Part shown: in pieces, positions 35,249 through 49,257 of the stretch | Position numbering within the stretch: position 1 is the stretch's first letter | Layout of the letters: every line of letters begins with the position of its first letter | From: Orbicella franksi | Lineage: Eukaryota | Length of the DNA: 64,000 nucleotides | Assembly: GCA_964199315.1 (NCBI GenBank) | Contig: OZ116709.1 | Location: 2,728,001-2,792,000 of the forward strand | Direction: 5' to 3' | Notes under the pieces: model-generated | Seen by the model: the letters and a program-made list of their open reading frames with translations, nothing else | Database searches by the model: none | What the model was told of the DNA's origin: nothing | Made by a program: the position numbers and the translations under genes

Positions 35249-37061
35249 CTACTTGAAAAGTGTTTTCAATCTATCTCTGTCTTCTGCATCATGTTCTTTG
35301 GCAAGCCTTTCTAGTTCTACAAGCTCTTTCTTGACAGTTTTTGTGAGTGATGGATCAAGAACTGCTACTCTATTGAAATCCTCTCTGGCTTCCTTAGGAT
35401 TCCAACATTTCACATGAGCCTTGGCACGTCGATATAAAGCCTTGACATTGTCTTTATCTTTTTCAAGCACTGTCGTTGTATGCTCAATAACTTCATAGTA
35501 ATCACCAAGAAAAAGCTTACACTGAGCATAGTTCAATAAGAAAGGAATTTTCATTCTGTCAAGGTTAAGCCAAGGTGTGTCACCAGGTTTTTCATGCAGA
35601 CAAAGCTGTTCCAAGCAACCCAATGCCTCGGCATACTTTTCTGCAGCTTCTTTGTACCTTTTCTGTTGATATAGTCTATTTCCAGCTTCTTTTAAGCTTG
35701 GTACATTGGACAATTTCTCATCAGCATCCATCTGCCAAGTTTCCTTCTGGAACTCACCAGGTTTCTCATATTTTAAAAGTTCTATTTCAAAGATAAGATC
35801 TTGTTCATTGACAAGCAAGTCGTCTAAGTCTGGATAACCAGTTGATTTCATGGCAGACAAACTGCAAGAATGTTCATGATGATTATGTTCTTCTGTTAAT
35901 TCTCCTTTTGCTTTCTTTGCAACTGTACGGAGACTCTTGGAAACTATTGCATAGCCTCCTACAAGCTAACAACACAAGTGTTAAGTTAAAACTGCGTATC
36001 ACTATTAACAAAAAGAAATCATAACAGTGGCCAGCTTTCACATGTTCACAATTTGGCCAACGCATCAGGCAAAATCCTCTTATTTATGTATATTTCCAGC
36101 ACAAATTAAGGCGTTTCATTATAATGAATGACTTCTAAGAGCCATTTCATTCACGATCTTCAGAGGAGGGAGTATAAGTGGAATGGCACAGATATCTGCT
36201 TTAGGAGGGATAGGGGTTTCATTGAGGGTCAGACACAGGATAAATTGACTGGTTGTGAGGTGACTTTGCCAGCCTGGTTTGACCATGTATGGAAAAGTGT
36301 TTCTTAATATAAAGAAAATAAACACTGCACCACTTATTAACCAATATTGAGGTCTTTACTGGAAAATCTCAAACTGAGACCTTGCAGTATTGACTGAGCA
36401 ATAGTGAGGTCAATACTGGAAGGCTGAGTTTTGAGATCTTCCCATAAAAACCGAAAGTTTGAGGTTAATAAGTTGTTTATTATATGGCTTTTTGCTTTGT
36501 TTTTGCAGGCCCATAATCGGCCTGTGGGCATTACAGGATAACAATGCCCTACAATTAGCCAATCAGAGTGCACGTTATATCGGCTAGAAACACAAGCCAT
36601 ATAATAAAAGCTAGTAAAACGTAGCTAACGTACAAAAAAAAAATATAAGCTTAATAAGATTTTAGCTGATCTTACCGATTTATCACAAGTGAAACGAGCG
36701 ATTTCTTTTTCTCTCATTGTTTTTATAAGTTCCTCCCAAACTTCCAGCTTGAATTTCTTCCCGATAAGGAGCTCAAAGGGCTGTCCAAGATCACGACTGC
36801 AGTCTATCGGCGTCTTGTCCTCATCGTTTTTGAACGTTTTGAAATGAAAAGTAGCCTAAAAATCCAAAGGATTTGTGAGTATATCTACTTTTAATTTATC
36901 TTATGTCTCGCGAGACCATTTAAATTTACCTACAAGAAGTCTTTATGAGTAGTTAATTTCACCTTAGATCCGTGTTCAAATAATGGTATTTCCCCTTCTC
37001 CAGCGTAAAGAACGTTTTTTGTGATCAAAGCTTGAGATTTTAGCTTGTTCGCTCTCGCCAT
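35249..37061 (-). CDS. AIP: Aryl hydrocarbon receptor-interacting protein (FKBP-like domain plus TPRs), ~331 aa
   Basis: Exons (-) 37061-36963, 36855-36676, 35965-35249; total 996 nt. Motifs GSK|ATFHFKT, PFELLIGKKFKLEVWE, SKSLR, LIFEIELL, GNRLY..K.Y.EA..KY, LLNYAQCKL, KALYRRAKAH, EAREDF. Confidence 0.95.
36334..36607. repeat. Hairpin-containing interspersed repeat (AIP intron 2)
   Basis: Termini ttattaaccaa / gccatataataa; central imperfect inverted repeat around gac...ggtc. Confidence 0.65.
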
Positions 37062-39595
37062 TTTGACAGCGCACCTGTGTAGATAACCGAGAGAGACTGG
37101 GTATCAGTAACCACTCTCTGCGCAGGAAAAGGGCTAAATCAGGCGTTTATTACTTTTTTTTTAGAAGAAGAAGCTCGCGGGAAAGGGTAAGAAAAGAACG
37201 CTTGATCGCAGGCTAGAAAAGAGCTTTCCCTACAGCTCTCAGTGAACTCTATTAAAGGCCGGTCGCTAATCAAAAGCTCAGTTTAGTTGGGAAACTTGGG
37301 GCCATTAGAAATCACTTGAGCCACTGGTATAGAAGGTCGTAGAAACGTCTTAACCGGAATTGGAATTATCAACAAACTTTTAGGCGCTGTTTCATGCAGT
37401 CAATATGACTACAGTGTGACATTTCTGTCACCGAAGAGATAAATTTGAGATTTTATGAAAAAGAAAAAAAAGAAGAGAAGCGATAGTTTTTTTCCGGTTC
37501 AGACAAAGCTATCCCTTTGAAATCTCCCCATGAAGCCGCTGACGTATTTAAAAGTAAATTGATCTGTCGTCTCTAATTATGTTTCAGTTCTTGATTACTG
37601 TATGATCCATTAGTAAGTAAAATGCGGAGCGCTGATTTACTGTTGTTAATACTGTTGTATTAAAGCACTATAAGTTTGAATTAATTATTTATTCCCCTAT
37701 CAGCTGCAGTTTTCACTCACCGAGCTTAAATCCGATTCCAAATCGAAATCGGCTCACTCAATCAAGCCGAAATGAAAAAAAGCAAAACAAAACCAAAAAA
37801 GCAATTTTTTTCTCCGTCAGTTGTGTACGTATGAAGTATATAGAGAAGTTACCGAGTAACTATATCCACAAGGAATAAAACACAAATAGCGGTGATAAAC
37901 ATATTAAACTTACGCATTTTAATAACTTGACGTTTCGTATGCTACGATGGCCCAAGAACAAAAGCCTTTATGAAACTATATCCACGCTATATTTTTAACA
38001 TGAGATACCTACCTTGAGATAACCTGAAATGCAAAGGAATCGCTCGGAGCCGTTAATCTGAGTTCGGTGCTTGTATCGAGGTGTGTACATGGGGTCATTT
38101 TTTCATTATTAAACCTGGGGATCTCGACTTTGACTAACTAAGAAACTTCATGGATAAATAGAACTCTCCTTACTAACAGCTAGCTCAAGCCAAGTCGAGG
38201 GAAAGCAAATACCATACTTGACTAGACAAGACAGGTGAAAGCCTGCATACTAATTCAGTGTTCATACTCAGTAACAATAGACCTATAAACGTTTTTTCAA
38301 TCTGACGCGCAAACCTTTTATTGATTTTTGTAACAAGAGGAGATTCTTTGATTTCAAAACCGAGAACCATTGATCAATGCAAGCCGAAGTGAAAATTGAA
38401 TCATGATTTGTGATATACAACCAAAAGCAATTTTTTTTGTTCATTTTTCTATTAATCAGTGAAATTCACTCAATAGCTAGACTTGAAATGTTTTTAAAAA
38501 ACTTCAACGTTGTATGCAAAATAAACTTGTTTGGTGCCACTGAAGATCCACTAAAAAACTTAAAATCTATTAAGACGAGTTTTTGTTTCCATTTAAAATT
38601 CTCAGCGGGAGAGATCCAATACTGCAAAGAAACAAACTAATGATATTTGTACGATATACTGTTATTGTGCGAGCCTTGTTTGGCGACTAGTAATAGTTTT
38701 ATCTTGTGTTACTAATTCTCAAGGCACGTGCCACACTTAAGTAGCTCAAAGTAAGAGAGTACCCTTTTCAATATATCACACGGCAATATCCTTTTTACAG
38801 ACTGTAAAGGCTATAACATGCAATCCTAATTAAACGCATTGAATACCAGACAAATAAAATAAGCTTGTGTTAGTTGAATCAATGATGTTTTCAGGCAGTT
38901 TCATCAAATCCGACGCGCTGATTTCCGCGTTAAACGTTTAAAATTCTCAAAACCATCTAGAAACTGAACCGAAAATTTGCATGTTAAGACGCTTTCCATA
39001 AACTTCTTTTGGTAACCCAATAACCGAAATCTCGTAATATCATTTTGCTTGATGGATAGTGTCTGCTTGAGAGCACATAATAGTTGCAGAGTCCATTTTA
39101 TTTGCTGTTATCGTTAACCATGGCCACACGAGACTAAATAATTAATTTGATTTGATTTTCCACTCAGCAGCCTGCGACCCACGCATCTGCTTTATCCATA
39201 ATTAGCTTGTTGGTTGCGCAAAATAACTGGTGGCAATTTGTAAGCACACCTACAACTGCGCGCGCGCCTTATAACACACAAACTAGCGCAGCCGACATTG
39301 GCCGAATGCCAGGGTATAAAGCTTTCACACAACCTGCTATCTGGCTGTTTTAAATTCATAATTTCAACGCCACGCTACTTTACGCTGAATTACGGAACTA
39401 GAACTTCAACTGCTCAAGTTAAAACGAACGTCAATTTATGAGTTTGTATAAATTCCAGTAGCTAGCGCAGGTCCGTTTTATTTCATGTCTTGAGAAGGTT
39501 GCTATAGTTCCACCTAGTATTTAGTCCTGGCTGCAAGCGGGGATACAGGCGTCGTGCGAAGGACCAGTATAAAAATTCAAGTAACAGGAACTAGC

Positions 39596-39707
39596 ATGCC
39601 TAGCGTTACCCATCCGCTACAGGCTGCCTCCTTGTCAGGACATGATGCTTTTGTAGAAGGAGTTGAATTCAGCAGTAATGGAAAATACATAATGTCAAGT
39701 TCTTCAG
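39596..39707 (+). CDS. TBL2: Candidate upstream alternative first coding exon of TBL2, lacking the TM anchor
   Basis: Encodes MPSVTHPLQAASLSGHDAFVEGVEFSSNGKYIMSSSS and ends at phase-1 donor CAG|GTGAGC, compatible with the exon at 42050. TATA-like tataaaaa near 39568. Confidence 0.65.
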
Positions 39708-39951
39708 GTGAGCTAATTCAATGCTACGCAAATCATTGTTTTTTTTTTTCCGCCGCTAAAAATATAGAATCTTTACAAAGGTTTATCTCATTTAATCGAA
39801 AAATTGTGTTCGTTAAAAAAACGTTGCTTTGAAGAGTAGTACTGTATGAATCGAGCTTATGCAGCGTTTTGCGCGCGTGAAAAAGCGCGAAAAAAAAAAA
39901 GCGTGAAGTGAAAACGAGGCTCCCATACATGTGCTGTAATCGTTAGGAAAC

Positions 39952-42900
39952 ATGGCGGGCGTCGAGGTCGCCACTCTTGGGACAATCATAGCAACCTCTT
40001 TAATTGCTGCTGCTGTGTTAGTAGTTATTCTGTTTATCGGCTTCAAGAGTAAACAGAGAAAGGATGACAGTTCTGAGACTGTTAAAAGTGAATTGGAAGA
40101 AAAACAGGCGATCAGCGGAGAGAGAAAAGACAAAGCAAAGACTACGAAAGGCAAACGAGGGAACGCGCCAGTGAAGAATCATCGAAGACAGTTTGCTATT
40201 CTGAAAGGCCACACAGGAGATGTTTTCGATTTGGAGTTTAGTTTGAATGGAAAATACATGGCCTCAACTTCGCAAGGTTGTCACAAAGAAATATAAATTC
40301 AATAAGTTTTCTTTTATAATGTAGCCGCTTGCATGCTTAGAGATGTGTCCACGTACACAGAGGATATATCACGTGAAGGAGGGCATTAAGCTTGTTATTT
40401 TTTATTTAGACGTTTATCTAAAACGTATTTTTACGTAAACAATTTATTATTTATACAATTCGTTAGCGCAAATTTGTGAAATTTTATTGCATTTGAGTCG
40501 TAGATTTTCAAGTCTGTTTTGGTAAAGGATTAATACTTGTCACAACTACTTGAATCTTTCCCCGGTGGAATCCCCCTCACATACAAACTCAACAATCCAG
40601 AAAATTGAGTTAGTCAATTTGTAGCTTATCTTATTAAGCATTGTTTTGTTGATAAGTGTGAGGCTGGAAGTATCAAGTGGCATATTCATTTTTAATATAC
40701 ACAGGATGAAGTACACAAACATGTTCTGAAGTTTGGGTTCATAATGTAAATTAATTTTTTTATAGTCTCATTGTGTAACATAGGTTTTTTGGTTTATTTT
40801 CAATACCATTGTTACTCAGGTCTAGTTTCTCAAAAAGTTTTTTTCAAGGGAAAGGCCAGAGAAATGTTCTTTTCCATGATATTTTTCAAAGTTGTCCCAA
40901 AATGAGTTTCTCTTCAATTTGTTGATTTCAAAATACATCTTAATTGGCAAGGGAGATAAATGCAAGCTTAATTAAGTTAAATAATTAACTATTATTTTAA
41001 AACATACATCTTCAAAATTCATTTCACAGATTTATTTAAAGAAAGCAACCTGGCTTAACAAGTTTTAAAATTCTTTGGTTCTTGAATTGGAAACCTGAAG
41101 ATGAACTTTCATGGCTGGCATACCATTTGTGGGACTTCCTTTGTCTCATATGTCATTTTGATTGATTTGATCAGCTCATGGGTATAATTGGCAACCACAC
41201 ATTACAAAATAATGTTTATTACTTTATGGATACTTTATGAAGCTGATCACCATCTGCGTGGCAAAACAAAAATATTTTCTTGAATTGCTATGTTGGCCAA
41301 ATACTTTGCATTCAGATCAGGACTTAACTACACTGTGTTTGAAAAAAATATTTCCTCATAATTTTGTACACTTAAAATCAGCGTATGATCACTTCAAAAA
41401 ATCTCTGTGTATTTTTTTTTTTTTTTAAAATAGAGTCCTAAATTGTGACGTCACAAAAGAACAAATTTGAGAAATTATGGGATTTGGCACCATTTTCGAA
41501 TAGAGGGTCCTTAGAAAAGGGTCCTTGCCAAAAATTACCTCTTAATTGTAATTCCCAGCCGAAATATAAAGGATGAAAATTTGCTACTGCCCCATATAAA
41601 TCTCTCTAATTTTGAGTCAGTTGAAGGGTTTGTATGGGATGCTATCAAACTTTGATCCCTTATATCTCTATCGGGAATTGCAATTCAGAGCTAATTTTTG
41701 GGATGAGGGCATCTTTTAGGATCCTCTATAAGAATATGACATCATATCCCATAATTTCAAAAATTTTGTTTTTGTGACGTCATCACTTTAGGACTCTATA
41801 ATTAATTTATCATTCATGAGTAGCATACACTAATTACATTTTTCCAGATCACTCCCAAAATATGTTAGAAGAGAAAAGAAGGCCTTCTACTGACTACAGA
41901 AACTAAAAGAATCTTGTATTTTGCCCTTCAATCAGCCTTACCCAGCTTGTAACTTTCACATTTACATCCTACTTGGACCACAAAATTAATGTAGTGAATG
42001 AAAAAAGAATAATACTTGAACTTAAATTATTTATTTATGTGTATTTCAGACAGGACAGTAAGACTATGGAGTGTAAAAGATTTCAAAGAGAAAGAACATA
42101 AGTAAGTTATGTTGTGGATTTATTTACTGTAGTCTGTGAGCAGTCAGTCTTTTCTGCAGGTCCCCTGAATGAATGGAAATTGCAGTTTATTGTTTTTCCT
42201 TCCTGTGTCTACTCATTTCAGACCTCACTGTTCCCCCATTCACCACTTGACGAGTCACTTTGGATACACAACATTATGAAAAGAAAGTGGCTGCCTCATT
42301 TTAGAAGTATTGTTCAAACTTGAAAAATAATCAAATGTAAAGAGTCTGTTGTCTTTGTTCATTATCTTTTATCTTATATTGTTGCAGTGGGCATGCACTA
42401 CAAATACCCACCACTGGAGTGAAATTAGTGCAATATGTCTCAAATGTAAATCACCATCAGATGTGAAAATGTTTGAATCAGTGAAATCTAGAAAAAATAC
42501 AATCATCAAAAATTAATAGCATGATACATTGATGTTTAGTTTTTATTCAAATAGGGGTGGCAAATGGTCCTCCAAAAACCAAGGGTCTCGCAAAATTTTC
42601 ACTGAATTTCACGGGTCTCGCAGTCGCATTTTTTAGCAGTTATGTGTGTCTCGCAGTCTTGATTTTTCTCCCAGAGCTCTCTTGCGGTCTCGATTTTTGT
42701 CAAGGCTAAGAAAGTCGCGAAGTACCGATTTGTTTATTTTTTTTTTCAGTAAAGTTAAATGGCATCACAACATCTTAGAACCTGAACATCTTGAGTTCGC
42801 ATTTAAAACACTTTAAAGTCTCGGTCTCGCAATTGAAGAAATCAAAATGTCTTGGGCTCGCAAAGAAAAATGCTAATCTCGTCGTCTTGCAAAGTCTGGC

Positions 42901-45900
42901 ATTTACCATTCTCCACCCCTTCAAATGCCAGTGGCACAAGGTGATGTCCTCTGGAAGGCTAGTCTGATGTATTACCTTTGCTGAAAAACAGGGAACAAAA
43001 ACTTTAAGCCACAGGCATGAAAATGCACTCATAAGAGCTGAACAATATTTTAAAATAACAGTCCTTCCTTTCCTTTAAAGAGTGGCCAGATGTTGACCTC
43101 ATGTTTACAGAGGGCAAAGGTTCTCAGACTCAGTGGGTTGATTATTGTACCCTTGGACTAGTTGTACTCCTTTGTGGTTCTCTTGCACAAAACATTTTAC
43201 ACACTGGCATCTTAAGCCAAGGAAATAAAATAATGTAGAATAGCAAATTCTCAGAACATTTAGACAGTGATAAAATGCTGATACAGGAGAACTTCAAGAC
43301 AGATCCATTAGACAAAAAAAGAAAAAGATATCAAGAGTTCTTTGAAAAAAATGGTTAGAGTGACATCAGTGACTGATTTTATCGTTTGATTTTCTTATAT
43401 TTTACCGTTAGATATGTAAGAGCAAATGTCGATTTTGATCATGGAACAAAGGTCAACTTCAGCCCTGATACAAGGTAAGAACACTTGTCAGTATTTTGAC
43501 AGATCTGTTATCATATACAGCCACAACTGCAGCTTTAAGTCAGGTGTCAGGAGATAAAATTCCCATGAAGCTTATAAACTGTTTTAAACATCAATCCTGG
43601 AAGCCTGTAAAAAAAAAGCCCTTCACTTACTGGTGTATAATGTAGGCTCATCAGGGTGAGCTTGGGTTTTTTTCCAAGGATGTGCCCTTTACTGCAGGGA
43701 ATTTGGATGATATTTTACATCCAAAGCATTTCGAGACCAGATCAGTGAGATGTCTGCATTTTGAGTTAAGCTAATAGGCTGGAAAGCTACGTTGCTGTTA
43801 TATTATTATCATAATGTTAACCATGCATGGCTGCCGTATTGGATACATGTTGTCCTTGAGAAATTAGAAAATCATTAATTTTAGATTTAAAAACATAATA
43901 CTGTTTATCATCTATTGAATGTCATCTAGCATTAATTTCATGTACATTATTGCTTTTTGACACTTTCTAAAGCTAATAATCTCACCATTTTGTCATTTTC
44001 CTATTAATTTTTAATTTCCTAGTTTCTTTTTTCCACTCTTCTCCATTGAAATCATTTTATATCCTCAGCACAAAATTTACTAATTAATATATCACATTTT
44101 TTGTTTTCATTATTGTGGCAATGTCATCCATTTCATTGTATCATCCCATGTCACATCTGGCATTTCTGATTAAGAACTTTAAATTTAACTTTTGTCCCTG
44201 AATAATGATTTTTTTAATTAATTTGAATCACTTTTATATGTCATTTCCATTAAACAATGATTAAACTTGAGCTGTTTTAACTTCTTAAATCGTTCTTTCT
44301 TGTCCTACTGTTTTGCCGACAGTGAAGATACTAAGCAACAACAACCAGTTCGCTTCAGGTTTGTTGAAATGCAACTAAACCTAAAAGTGCATGGAGATAT
44401 AATATGTAACAATGTACTTTAAACAAGAAAAAAATGATAAATCTGAATGTTCATATAATTATTATTAAAAAATTAGTATATCTGATTAAATTTGATTTTG
44501 TCTAAGTTTCTAAGAAGGCCCTTTGCTACATAATACTTTGTAAACCTAATTTATAAGTAACTCTTTCTTTGCTAACCCAAGATTGATGTGTTAATTCTCT
44601 TTACTAAGTCATGCACATTCTTTTTATGTTTGTCCTGATTTTAAAAGGCATTTAAATAAAATAATAACCTTAATCATAAAAATCAACAAAGATACAAAAA
44701 AATTTTATATTTTATCCCCAAAATAATTTAAATTAGAGTGGAAACATTGCCACTTGTAAAGCTGGCTCTTTGAGATTAGCGAAAACTAGGTATAAAAAAT
44801 TGTTCAAATCAAAAACAAAAAAATAGTCTCATTTTGGCATCAGGACTTCAACTCTAAATTATCCTGACAAAAAAGCTCCTAATCCTATCTGAAACAGCTG
44901 GACACAGACTTAAAGATACCATGCCGTTGCCTATCATTAGAAGTTCTGTACTCTTTTTAGCACTCAACTTGTTAGAAGGGCAAATGAGGTTCCTCCTCGT
45001 TTTTTCTATTCGAGTAAATCCCCTGTCATCTCCATCCATGTAGCATTGATTTTAATGCTGATTGTAGAACGTAATTTACTGTGTTTCAGGGCATTTATTA
45101 CAGCTTTGGCTAATGGCAACACAATCCGAGTATTTAAAGTGAACAAGAAAAAGGATGGATCTGGAGCTTCCATTACTGGTGAATTTGATTTTCCTGTCAA
45201 ACATTCGGCAGAGATCATCAACATTGCTGTGGCATCCAGTGGCAAGTTCATTATGTCATGTTCCAGTGATACAACGATAATCTTGTGGAATTTAAAGGGT
45301 ATGCTTTAGCTGCTAACTGTTGGGAAGAGGGGTCTAAAATGAAAGTAAAGATCTTTGGTAACCTCTATCCATTTTAAACTCAAACTGGACACAACCTTCA
45401 AGAGCTGCTGTTGTTGCCTCTAACAAATTTGGCCAGTTCAACCCTCCACACAGACACCTCCATGAAGGCTTTTAGCCAGGATTTGAAGAGTGGGTGTCCA
45501 AAATGTGCTATATAAGGGCCTGCTCAAATGAACAATTTATAAGGCAACATATCAAAAATAAAACAATTTTCTCTAATAAGCGGCCGTCCACAGGATGCCT
45601 GGATGCCCATCTGGCTAAAAGCCTGCCTCCATGATGTAGACACATTGATAATATTCTAAACAGTTCAGTAACACTCCCAGAGAAACCAGAACTCATATTT
45701 TTAACTCTAACAGGCAAATCAATCCACAATAAATTAAAACACTCACCTCTCTCACTTTGGAGTCTGTATTGATGAGGCTATGACTGGACACTGTTTATCT
45801 GTTGTAGGTGAAGTACTGTCGATAATTGACACTCGTCAGATGAACAACAGCTTTGCAAGTATATCTCCTTGTGGGAAATTTGTTGCATCTGCAGGTAGGA

Positions 45901-46843
45901 ACATTAAAATCTTAACAACCTTAAATTCTCCAGAGCATTCAATTTCTGGTTATGTATCACCAAATTCTCAGAACTGTCACTGGATTAGCAATTTACTGAT
46001 TAACCAGCAGCTGGCAAACTTTATTACATGCACTGTGTCAAATGTTGCACTGACAAATAGTCAAGGGCTACTCACAAGTGATCAAGTAAATGAAGTTTAT
46101 AAAATAAATGTACTTTTTTAGGGTAGTGAAACCTGTTTGCTAATGTGTCTTGTTCTTGAGAGTGTAATATATTTCAGTTCTTAAACCCTGCTGGCACATC
46201 TCGGTCTTAGGTTAAGCTGGTAATCTTTCAGGTTACTTAAGGGTTAGACTGGTTTAGTGGTGGGAACATTTGATCAGCATTTGACACACCTGTCATTTAC
46301 ACCTCAATTGAAAACTGGCCATTTGTCAGCTGTAACTACTGTACCTTTACATGTACAGTTCATATCATTAGGTACCAATATTTCTCTTAGGGTTCACCCC
46401 TGATGTTAAACTTTGGGCCGTGGAGTTCACCAAGTCTGATGAATTCAAGCAGGTAACATATTACATATTACATGTCTGTTTACAAGCCTTTTAATTACAT
46501 TAATAACATTTCCTTACAGTATATCTATTATGAAGTGCATAATTTATTTTACTTGTTGCAGGTTTCAAGAGCAATGGAGTTGAAAGGCCACACTGCTGGT
46601 GTTTATCATTTTAGTTTTTCAGCAGACTCCACAAGGTACTAGATAATGATGTACTACTGTTCAGTCATGACTAAGTAAGTTACTATTTCCTTTCATGATA
46701 AATGGCGTCACTCTAAATGTCAGCTTCCCAAATATAGCCTACATAGCTGGCAGTTTTGGTGCTATTTTGATGGAGTTTTGTGGTGCCAAACAAGCAGAAA
46801 GCTGCAAAAAAAAAAAAATGGCGAGAAGAGAATGAGGGAGAAA

Positions 46844-46917
<74 letters not shown>

Positions 46918-49257
46918 ACCATTCTTCTCGCAGCTTTTCCTTCACTGTTTATCTGCACCATGAGAGCCTATAGAAAAAGCCCACATAAACCACCAGCCAC
47001 ACAGGTTACCCAAATACAATTTTACTCAACATGGTTGTTTTAAAATTTGCATTATCAACCTTCAGTAAATAATGTGTTATGCATTTTACTGGTGCCTTCT
47101 TTTAGATAACTGCAATTTCTTACAAGCAGTTTAAGAGCATTGATGAAGGACTTTGGAGGAGTCTGTGGGCAGCTCTTTAAAGTTTACACTGGTGTATAAG
47201 TTTTTGGTTGAAAAAGATGTGAAAATCATCCTGCATCTTTACTTCCTTTGTTGTTTTTATTAGGATGGCAACTGTATCAAAAGATGGAACGTGGAAAATT
47301 TGGGACATTGATGGTGAGTTTTCTTTACTACAATGAGATTTGAGCTGTATGTAGCTAATGAGAGGGTTATATTTGGGGGAGAGTTGAAACATCACACTAA
47401 AAGTCCCTTCTTCTCTTTTCCCTTCGTGTCCCTTTGCTGCACTTCTTCCTTTTTTCAGGCCCCTTCCTCAACTGGGGGACTCACTTGTGGGAACTGTTTG
47501 TTTTGGTTTTAAAGTAATTGTGGCTTAAAATGTAGTTTCAAACCAATTTTCTATTTCTGTCTTATTCAGTGGAGTACACCAAGAAGCAAGACCCTCATCT
47601 ACTTATAACAGGGATCTATGATGCTTCGTTTGGCGTTTACAACAACATGCTCATCAGCATGTCCCCGGATGCTTACGTCACGGCTGTAGCTATGGGACGA
47701 TCCGTAGGAATTTTTAATACAGAAAATGGGAACTTAGAAGAACTACTAGAGGAAGTACACGGAGGTAATATAAATGAAATAGTTCTGGTACCAGGCTTCC
47801 CTTTTTTCCGGTATCTCGCACTGCTTGTCTTGTCAGCCACATAATTGACTTGTTTTGGTTAAGACGAATTCCGCTCAAAGTTCGAGCAATAAGTGCAAAA
47901 ATTGTTTACCAAAAATCTGCTCATAGTACGGTAACGTTTTGAATGCTGTTCTAAACTTCTCACGTTAATTCATTTCTGTAAGTGACCCCGCGATTAGATT
48001 CTCAAGCATTCTCGGGAAAATTAGTTTCAAACCTTGTAAGACGGCTTAAAGCGAGCGTTACTGTATTTTGAACTGATGTGAAATGTCTGTTTTTATAAAA
48101 ATATGGATGACTTCAAATTCAATTTTCTCTCGCGGGGTCAGCTTGAGAGCTTAAGTCTCGATAAGTTCTTCTTAACTGTATTCAAAATATTGCCATGCTC
48201 TGAGGTTTTTTTGGTAACTTGATTTTTGCCATTATTGCTCGAATGTTCCGCGGAAATCATCTTAACTCCTCAGTTTGCTAACTAAGCTCCTAATCCTTTC
48301 CTTTCTTAGCATTTTTTCGGTTATTTCTTTTGAGCGACTCTATTAGCCCTCTATATTACAGAGATTACTGTCTGAACTTTGATTATCAAAGACAAACACC
48401 TTCTGAGCTCATGCAAGTTTTTGTCTCCAGAAATCAGTTTTTAAAATTTACATTTTCCTTGATGTGATTAGAATAACTTCACTTAGGGTGACTAGTAAAG
48501 TAACATATCAGTACTGCTCGTGACACTGCCAACACACATTTGTTGTTGTTGTTGTTGTTGTTTCTTTCAGATGATATCACAGCGATCGCGTGGCACCCAA
48601 GCTCTCGTTACCTGGCCACCGCAGGAGGCGCGGACCGTCAAATCCGCGTGTGGCATAATGCGGCTGGGATCAAGGTTCAGATTGAAGATCTAGAGGGGCG
48701 AATAAACCGTGCCAGAAACGAAAACGTTAAGGTAAAATTGCAGCACATTTGGATTACTGAGCATTTTACAAGCGAGGTTTGCTGGGGTAGAGAAACGGCA
48801 TGTTAAATTCACACCGGAGTAGAAGATTTCAGACGACTTTTTAGGAAAATTTTGCGGATTCTTTGCGTAAATAGATATAAACAGTGGTTTTCCAGTGAAT
48901 GAAATATAATACAGTACAGGGAGTATATAGCGTGTTCTTTATACAAACAAACTAGTTATTTAAATTTTTATCTTTTCCTAACACAGGAGAGATTGGAACA
49001 ACAGGTTCTTGAAGCAAGGTAGAGTGGTTTTTTTTCATGTTCTATAGTTCTATATTCGCTACGTTTTCTTGTTCAATGTCAAATTAAATTGCAATAAACA
49101 TTAATGTGGGCATATTTTCTCACTTTCTTTTTCATTTACTGCTGTCCTTTCAGCTGTTTGTCTGTTCGTTTCATTCAACATTCGCTGTCTCTCTGCTAAT
49201 TCGTTCTTCTTTTTAATTTTTAGAGCGTCATTAGACAAGTTGAACCTCATTGGCTAA
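39952..49257 (+). CDS. TBL2: Transducin beta-like protein 2 (N-terminal TM plus WD40 repeats), ~447 aa
   Basis: Exons 39952-40276, 42050-42101, 43412-43474, 45090-45298, 45808-45894, 46391-46452, 46562-46635, 47264-47313, 47570-47764, 48571-48731, 48987-49018, 49224-49257; total 1344 nt. Motifs LKGH, FSLNGKYMAS..DRTVRLWS.KDF..KEHK, ANVDFDH, FTPDVKLW, ELKGHTAG, SKDGTWKIWDIDVEY. Confidence 0.93.
41431..41798. mobile_element. MITE in TBL2 intron
   Basis: TIR tagagtcctaaa / tttaggactcta plus subterminal inverted tgtgacgtca..ttatggga blocks. Confidence 0.75.
42554..42919. mobile_element. MITE with GG...CC termini and near-perfect 8-bp TSD
   Basis: Imperfect TIR ggggtggcaaatgg / ccattctccacccc. 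Flanks ttcaaata / ttcaaatg. Internal (gg)tctcgca subrepeats. Confidence 0.65.
46846..46913. repeat. (CT)n microsatellite of ~34 units, inside a tagcct...aggtta MITE-like repeat (~46735-47010)
   Basis: Read directly from the sequence. Confidence 0.9.

Follow-up and report, generated by a model that had tools for sequence, protein, structure and literature searches.

A conserved first exon that may give a putative coral TBL2 gene an isoform without the membrane anchor

The stretch of DNA analysed here, referred to below as the window, comprises 64,000 nucleotides of the coral Orbicella franksi (GenBank assembly GCA_964199315.1, contig OZ116709.1, positions 2,728,001 to 2,792,000 of the forward strand), and all coordinates are counted from its first letter. 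Its plus strand carries a putative orthologue of TBL2, known in human as a type-I membrane protein of the endoplasmic reticulum (ER) with a WD40 domain and 447 amino acids, which binds phospho-PERK and eIF2alpha (PMC4231078). The coral gene has two alternative first coding exons, designated A and B, which are spliced to the same second exon and of which only B encodes a membrane anchor. The 5' part of the locus consists of the following features:

39363..39595, plus strand: 5' leader of the exon-A transcript (RNA coverage from about 39360-39400; no splice joint entering from upstream)
39438..39461, plus strand: upstream open reading frame (uORF) 1 in the exon-A leader, seven codons and a stop, out of frame with the main reading frame
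39485..39493, plus strand: minimal uORF ATG TCT TGA in the exon-A leader
39527..39595, plus strand: block of 23 in-frame codons before the exon-A AUG, a candidate non-AUG N-terminal extension (comparative evidence)
39596..39707, plus strand: coding part of exon A, ATG, 37 codons and one base, phase-1 GT donor (RNA junctions, conservation)
39952..40276, plus strand: coding part of exon B, ATG, 108 codons and one base, phase-1 GT donor (RNA junctions)
39967..40044, plus strand: hydrophobic segment that encodes the exon-B membrane anchor (about residues 6-31); Lys/Arg-rich sequence comes next (Kyte-Doolittle, coral conservation)
40045..40176, plus strand: charged basic linker from anchor to propeller, missing from isoform A (alignment)
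42050..42101, plus strand: exon 2, with the acceptor common to A and B; completes WD repeat 1 (splice site, RNA)

Exon A opens with the ATG at 39596 and contributes an open reading frame (ORF) of 37 codons that ends in phase 1 at 39707 (TCAG/GTGAGC, the slash marking the splice site), and exon B opens with the ATG at 39952 and contributes 108 codons ending in the same phase at 40276 (CAAG/GTTGTC). At the common acceptor (tttcag/AC at 42050), the G carried over from either exon makes a GAC (Asp) codon. Against the 39-position Pfam WD40 profile, either peptide aligns to positions 5-30, and the two exons thus encode the equivalent part of WD repeat 1. An earlier note on this DNA, drawn up from its letters, had described two upstream exons with their own ATGs and phase-1 donors, each encoding the start of the first WD repeat and each fitting the exon at 42050, and this description holds in every structural detail. 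The same is true of its placement of the anchor in the downstream exon only: the best 19-residue Kyte-Doolittle window reaches 2.87 in isoform B versus 1.07 in isoform A, all windows starting at residues 1-17 of exon B exceed 1.6, and the anchor segment is conserved in all corals compared.

Both exons are transcribed. We mapped three polyA raw-read runs (X21, X23, X24) and one contig run (X14) over 38000-43999, with a threshold of 3 reads and 2% for the reporting of splice joints; identity to the window is 99% or higher for most reads. The sequence of the window also occurs in both RNA and DNA sequencing runs from corals. The joint from exon A to exon 2 (39707 to 42050, GT..AG) is carried by seven reads in X23 (six start positions), three in X24 (three start positions) and none in X21, and by one contig of X14 at a depth of 38.7. 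The joint from exon B (40276 to 42050) has 15, 21 and 12 reads in X21, X23 and X24 and a contig depth of 93.8 in X14, and the one from exon 2 to exon 3 (42101 to 43412) has 11, 35 and 16 reads and a contig depth of 99.1. Since the A and B counts add up to 15, 28 and 15, close to the counts for the joint of exons 2 and 3, nothing points to a further first exon in major use. The earlier note had proposed the search for junction reads at the 39707 donor as a test of its claim, and the donor proved to be used in X23, X24 and X14. No joint from A to B was detected in the mapped interval at this threshold, nor was any joint or loose end entering exon A from upstream in these runs. An X14 contig runs colinearly with the genome between 39363 and about the exon-A donor (39702), depth in X23 rises from 0 before 39200 through about 1 at 39200-39399 to about 10 at 39400-39599, and coverage is almost nil from 39708 to about 39900 before rising again upstream of 39952. 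A and B are mutually exclusive first coding exons, with two transcription starts approximately 0.5 kb apart. Exon A accounts for some 20-29% of the transcripts in X23, X24 and X14.

The reads also reveal differences from the assembly. Every RNA read differs from it at 40008 (T>C) and 40111 (A>T) in exon B, and 42093 (A>G) in exon 2 is polymorphic among the reads; the RNA samples and the sequenced individual probably differ here in strain or allele. Within intron 1, the reads over 41400-41800 are only 95-99% identical to the window, with many variant positions; loose ends at 41799/41800 differ between runs, and repeats at 41395-41437 were skipped in read mapping. This signal looks like a dispersed repeat expressed from other copies, and not like a part of TBL2.

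Exon A is well conserved among corals. A protein search with the stop-free stretch around it returned 22 homologous coral ORFs in which the peptide is nearly invariant from the Met to the Gly at the donor, where the similarity stops, and its AUG is invariant in 23 of 23 sequences. In every coral locus compared, exon A lies 130-250 nucleotides upstream of the anchor-bearing exon B, with the ATG and the GT donor of each exon preserved. We analysed selection in seven coral lineages, which are separated on exons 2-7 by a synonymous divergence (dS) of 0.5-1.4, that is, near saturation. The variable sites of exon A are distributed 10/4/30 over codon positions 1/2/3, with a ratio of nonsynonymous to synonymous divergence (ω) of about 0.03, against 19/16/120 and about 0.04 for exons 2-7, and 9/6/22 and about 0.10 for the WD part of exon B, the part paralogous to A. 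The intron and upstream flanks are only 53-68% identical, as measured on a forced global alignment. With its variation concentrated at third positions, its low ω and its much more diverged flanks, exon A is not a decaying copy. This pattern indicates that it is a translated and functionally constrained coding exon, and that its constraint matches that of the constitutive exons. The earlier note had also asked for conservation in relatives, and both exons are indeed kept across the seven lineages, exon A showing no degeneration.

In a more distant cnidarian lineage, two loci (L021 and L022) whose exon 4 is 64-74% identical to that of the window have an equivalent arrangement. In L022, an AIP-like gene on the minus strand comes first; next is an exon that has an ATG and a phase-1 GT donor but no anchor, and the anchor exon follows some 350 nucleotides later, ahead of exon 2. 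The A-like exons of L021 and L022 differ from each other at 8/4/26 sites by codon position, and their flanks are unalignable. In a tree built on 32 homologous residues, the A exons and the B exons form separate clades with 100/100 support. Since the tandem is common to corals and the distant lineage, and the A and B clades are separate, the duplication of A and B predates the split between the two. L020 and L022 derive from Tara Pacific coral metagenomes, an expedition that sampled Pocillopora, Porites and the hydrozoan Millepora (PMC10235432). Judging from this sampling, the outlier lineage may be Millepora, in which case the A/B pair would be ancestral to cnidarians.

As to the origin of the pair, exon A exists as a single copy in the whole 497-Mb genome, and its top match other than itself is exon B, with 49% identity over 35 amino acids and a weak E-value. 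The sequence similarity being modest, the paralogy of A and B rests mainly on their adjacency, identical phase and identical position in the repeat. Plausibly, only the last third of exon B was copied, and exon A is what this old copy has become by divergence. The earlier note had proposed that an exon duplication created two isoforms: the alternative first exons are real, their origin by duplication is plausible, and the tree makes the split an old one.

Downstream of exon 2, the gene continues on the plus strand. Beyond the joint between exons 2 and 3, the model was assembled from splice sites and reading frame:

43412..43474, plus strand: exon 3 (joint 42101 to 43412 with 11, 35 and 16 reads)
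44323..44358, plus strand: alternative in-frame cassette exon of 36 nucleotides, adding 12 amino acids between exons 3 and 4 (loose ends, splice sites, conservation)
45090..45298, plus strand: exon 4 (splice sites and frame, loose end at 43475, conservation)
45808..45894, plus strand: exon 5 (splice sites and frame, conservation)
46391..46452, plus strand: exon 6 (splice sites and frame, conservation)
46562..46635, plus strand: exon 7 (splice sites and frame, conservation)
47264..47313, plus strand: exon 8 (splice sites and frame)
47570..47764, plus strand: exon 9, ending GAG/GTAATA (splice sites and frame)
48571..48731, plus strand: exon 10, last WD repeat and start of the C-terminal helical tail (frame, WD40 profile)
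48987..49022, plus strand: exon 11 with the TAG stop at 49020-49022 (AATAAA about 80 nucleotides downstream)

In this model each transcript has eleven exons, both frames are intact, and isoforms B and A have 437 and 366 amino acids. The earlier note had rightly predicted two lengths, but its sizes of about 447 and 376 amino acids are both some 10 too large, because exon 9 ends at 47764, the sole in-frame GT donor there. About 37% of the reads leaving exon 3 enter the cassette exon (10 versus 17 in X23, 6 versus 10 in X24), a figure that derives from loose ends at 43474, donor use not being directly observed; the cassette peptide is kept in five other corals. Elsewhere in the gene, exons 6 and 7 are contiguous in one coral locus (L013:16387-16518), where the intervening intron has been lost in that lineage, and the intron between exons 7 and 8 contains a long CT/GA dinucleotide microsatellite at 46850-46920.

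Upstream of exon A, the minus strand carries an AIP-like PPIase/TPR gene (35252-37103; Pfam PPIase_AIP and TPR matches on the orthologous ORFs), and exon A thus sits in the interval from which the two genes are transcribed divergently. Most related coral loci, and L022 as well, have the same head-to-head order; L019 does not, an ORF with a MENTAL domain replacing the AIP-like gene there as upstream neighbour. A 1240-amino-acid reverse-transcriptase/endonuclease ORF, resembling that of a long interspersed nuclear element, lies on the minus strand in the same locus (L019:13862-17584), downstream of exon 3, and displaces exon 4 beyond the end of the sequence compared. We also considered exon A as an internal exon preceded by an anchor exon further upstream, and rejected this placement: neither a joint nor a loose end leads into exon A, the neighbouring gene is divergent, and the candidate AG acceptors are not conserved.

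The assignment of the gene to TBL2 is a lead. The WD40 profile is matched by exons A, B, 4 and 10, Pfam matches to WD40 and beta-propeller families occur in homologous ORFs, and the tail from exons 10-11, where TBL2 carries a C-terminal coiled coil, is charged and, by eye, helical-looking. When the exon-B peptide was compared with the Atlas, six of the ten top family sets were named TBL2 (Arthropoda, Chordata, Streptophyta), at scores of 0.84-0.89 which, being below 0.9, count as a lead only; the Atlas cluster names also include shorter chordate "isoform X3" models of 395 amino acids. Atlas searches with the exon-4 and exon-A peptides returned only generic WD40 fragment clusters, and a PDB sequence search with the exon-4 peptide returned generic WD40 proteins and no TBL2 chain. 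An HMMER search with the same peptide was dominated by multi-repeat WD proteins, TBL2 being represented by only two unspliced coral ORF fragments. None of the matches of the word-indexed protein searches is a TBL2-named protein, their length window having admitted unspliced ORFs of corals and their relatives and not annotated full-length proteins. None of the papers searched links TBL2 to corals.

The domains of human TBL2 have been mapped with deletion constructs. Residues 9-31 form the ER anchor, and deletion of residues 1-31 leads to diffuse staining; residues 32-74 are needed for binding to phospho-PERK, which the 75-447 fragment loses, and the WD40 domain binds eIF2alpha (PMC4231078). Isoforms are not mentioned in that domain-mapping paper (PMC4231078). 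The coral linker (40045-40176) would correspond by position to human residues 32-74, the phospho-PERK-binding region.

Taken together, these observations make it likely that the gene produces an anchored isoform B and an anchor-less isoform A with a complete propeller, the latter predicted to be cytosolic and uncoupled from PERK. Exon B would yield the canonical 437-amino-acid protein, composed of a membrane anchor, the charged linker, the WD40 propeller and a helical tail. Exon A would exchange anchor and linker for a short N-terminus while supplying equivalent first strands of WD repeat 1, giving a protein of 366 amino acids, or of 389 if translation begins at a conserved upstream CTG. With no hydrophobic segment, and by analogy with the human deletion mutants (PMC4231078), isoform A is expected to be soluble and cytosolic. 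It would approximate the human 75-447 fragment, a free propeller with neither ER nor PERK tether, and would keep the interactions mediated by the propeller, acting independently or competing with isoform B for partners. The ratio of the two promoters would then set the balance between ER- and PERK-coupled and free TBL2 activity.

Several points weigh against this interpretation. The similarity of A to B is only slightly above that of unrelated WD repeats (46% over 26 amino acids), and the putative orthology rests on domain architecture, Atlas matches below 0.9 and the human sequence. Exon A is undetected in one of the three raw-read runs, X21, and its leader holds two uORFs, so that the isoform A protein could be scarce. 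What is predicted for localisation and PERK binding comes by extrapolation from deletion constructs of the human protein. Finally, the RNA runs were chosen by species label.

Other explanations have to be weighed against that of two functional isoforms. The modest similarity to exon B might suggest that occasional splicing noise brings in exon A as a duplicate in decay or as a piece of some other WD gene; yet exon A makes up 20-29% of the junctions in three runs and its peptide is invariant across lineages separated by a dS of about 1, which renders this reading extremely improbable. The exon-A transcripts might also be mainly regulatory, either dampening the B promoter or giving a poorly translated mRNA, with a peptide of no consequence. 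Transcription from A must cross the B promoter, as it starts about 0.5 kb upstream of the B start, and the two uORFs would fit poor translation. One of them, ATG-TCT-TGA, has the same nine bases in L011 and L013 and is implied in L015, which together with the window makes four lineages, and is absent from the L009/L007 clade. A purely regulatory role is nevertheless very unlikely, given the third-position variation and the ω of about 0.03, and given that ATG, frame and phase-1 donor have been kept in two deep lineages. The earlier note had suggested a stress-response switch, in which heat or ER stress would move transcription between the A and B promoters. Such a switch would be consistent with the absence of exon A from X21 and its sizeable share in X23, X24 and X14; the difference is however borderline (Fisher p = 0.05-0.08; p = 0.05 for 0 of 15 versus 10 of 43 junction reads), and tissue, life stage, genotype or library type could account for it equally well, so that we consider the switch unlikely on present evidence.

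The alternative that deserves most attention concerns the N-terminus of isoform A, which may not be simply cytosolic if it begins with the 23-residue extension from the CTG at 39527, which would confer a distinct property, for example another location, a partner or an extra propeller strand. This conserved block upstream of the exon-A AUG had been missed by the earlier note. In the seven coral lineages, 39527-39595 comprises 23 in-frame codons with no stop and no ATG in any frame, and stop codons occur at varying distances just 5' of it. Its first codon is an invariant CTG, flanked by a purine at -3 and a G at +4. Variable sites are distributed 10/6/17 by codon position over the whole block (Fisher p = 0.004) and 4/2/10 in its last 13 codons (p = 0.002), and Arg codons swap synonymously among CGA, AGG and AGA. 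A conserved RNA structure was examined as the cause of this conservation and discarded, the consensus fold being weak (-9.95 kcal/mol; covariation term -0.42). The exon A of the distant lineage opens with an AUG that precedes the first propeller strand by 24 codons, with no conservation upstream of this AUG, and a longer N-terminus may therefore be ancestral. On the other hand, the first 10 codons of the block are not periodic, its ω of about 0.21 denotes a much weaker constraint than on exon A, only seven lineages are involved, and the invariance of the AUG at 39596 in 23 sequences points to this codon as a start. Because the AUG is invariant too, both starts may be used. A CUG-initiated proteoform of 389 amino acids is thus possible, with chances near to or slightly below even, and we judge a non-cytosolic or otherwise altered isoform A to be somewhat less probable than a plain one; in any case, the extension would supplement the two-isoform explanation instead of excluding it. 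More speculatively, and in our view improbably, phosphorylation of eIF2alpha, the pathway on which human TBL2 acts through PERK, could choose, through the uORFs and the CUG, whether and which proteoform of isoform A is made, in a feedback between the integrated stress response and its adaptor.

If the two-isoform explanation is correct, corals appear to encode a natural separation-of-function TBL2, consisting of the propeller without the anchor or the PERK-binding linker. Since selection has long kept the anchor-less isoform, TBL2 would have a role independent of the ER, or one in competition with the anchored form; native human TBL2, an ER-anchored adaptor in the PERK arm of the unfolded-protein response, cannot reveal such a role of the propeller away from the ER. 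The ratio of the two splice junctions would provide a simple read-out for coral stress biology. There is also a likely annotation gap, as a conserved coding exon, and with it perhaps a non-AUG start, is absent from gene models restricted to the anchored form.

Compared to human TBL2, isoform B has the same layout, with a single N-terminal anchor, a charged linker, a WD40 propeller and a helical C-terminus (437 versus 447 amino acids). The difference lies in isoform A: a single anchored protein is described in human, where the anchor-less forms were engineered, whereas the coral would encode a natural one through a dedicated and conserved first exon. Alternative first exons or promoters that give membrane-bound versus soluble isoforms, and exclusive exons arising from tandem duplication, are a familiar mechanism. 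The coral pair likewise has two transcription starts, one acceptor, no A-B joint, equal phase and homologous content. Unlike in typical mutually exclusive duplicated exons, the copy covers only the 3' third of the first exon, so that it is not an exchange of equivalent domains, and the pair is very old with both members constrained. FGF2, MYC and PTEN-L are known to have N-terminally extended proteoforms that start at CUG or other near-cognate codons. The upstream block of exon A likewise combines a conserved AUG-free in-frame extension, an invariant CTG in good context and preceding uORFs, but in contrast to these three it is known from comparative evidence alone. The novelty hence lies in the individual case and its age, in how strongly the anchor-less exon is constrained, and in a possible start at a non-AUG codon.

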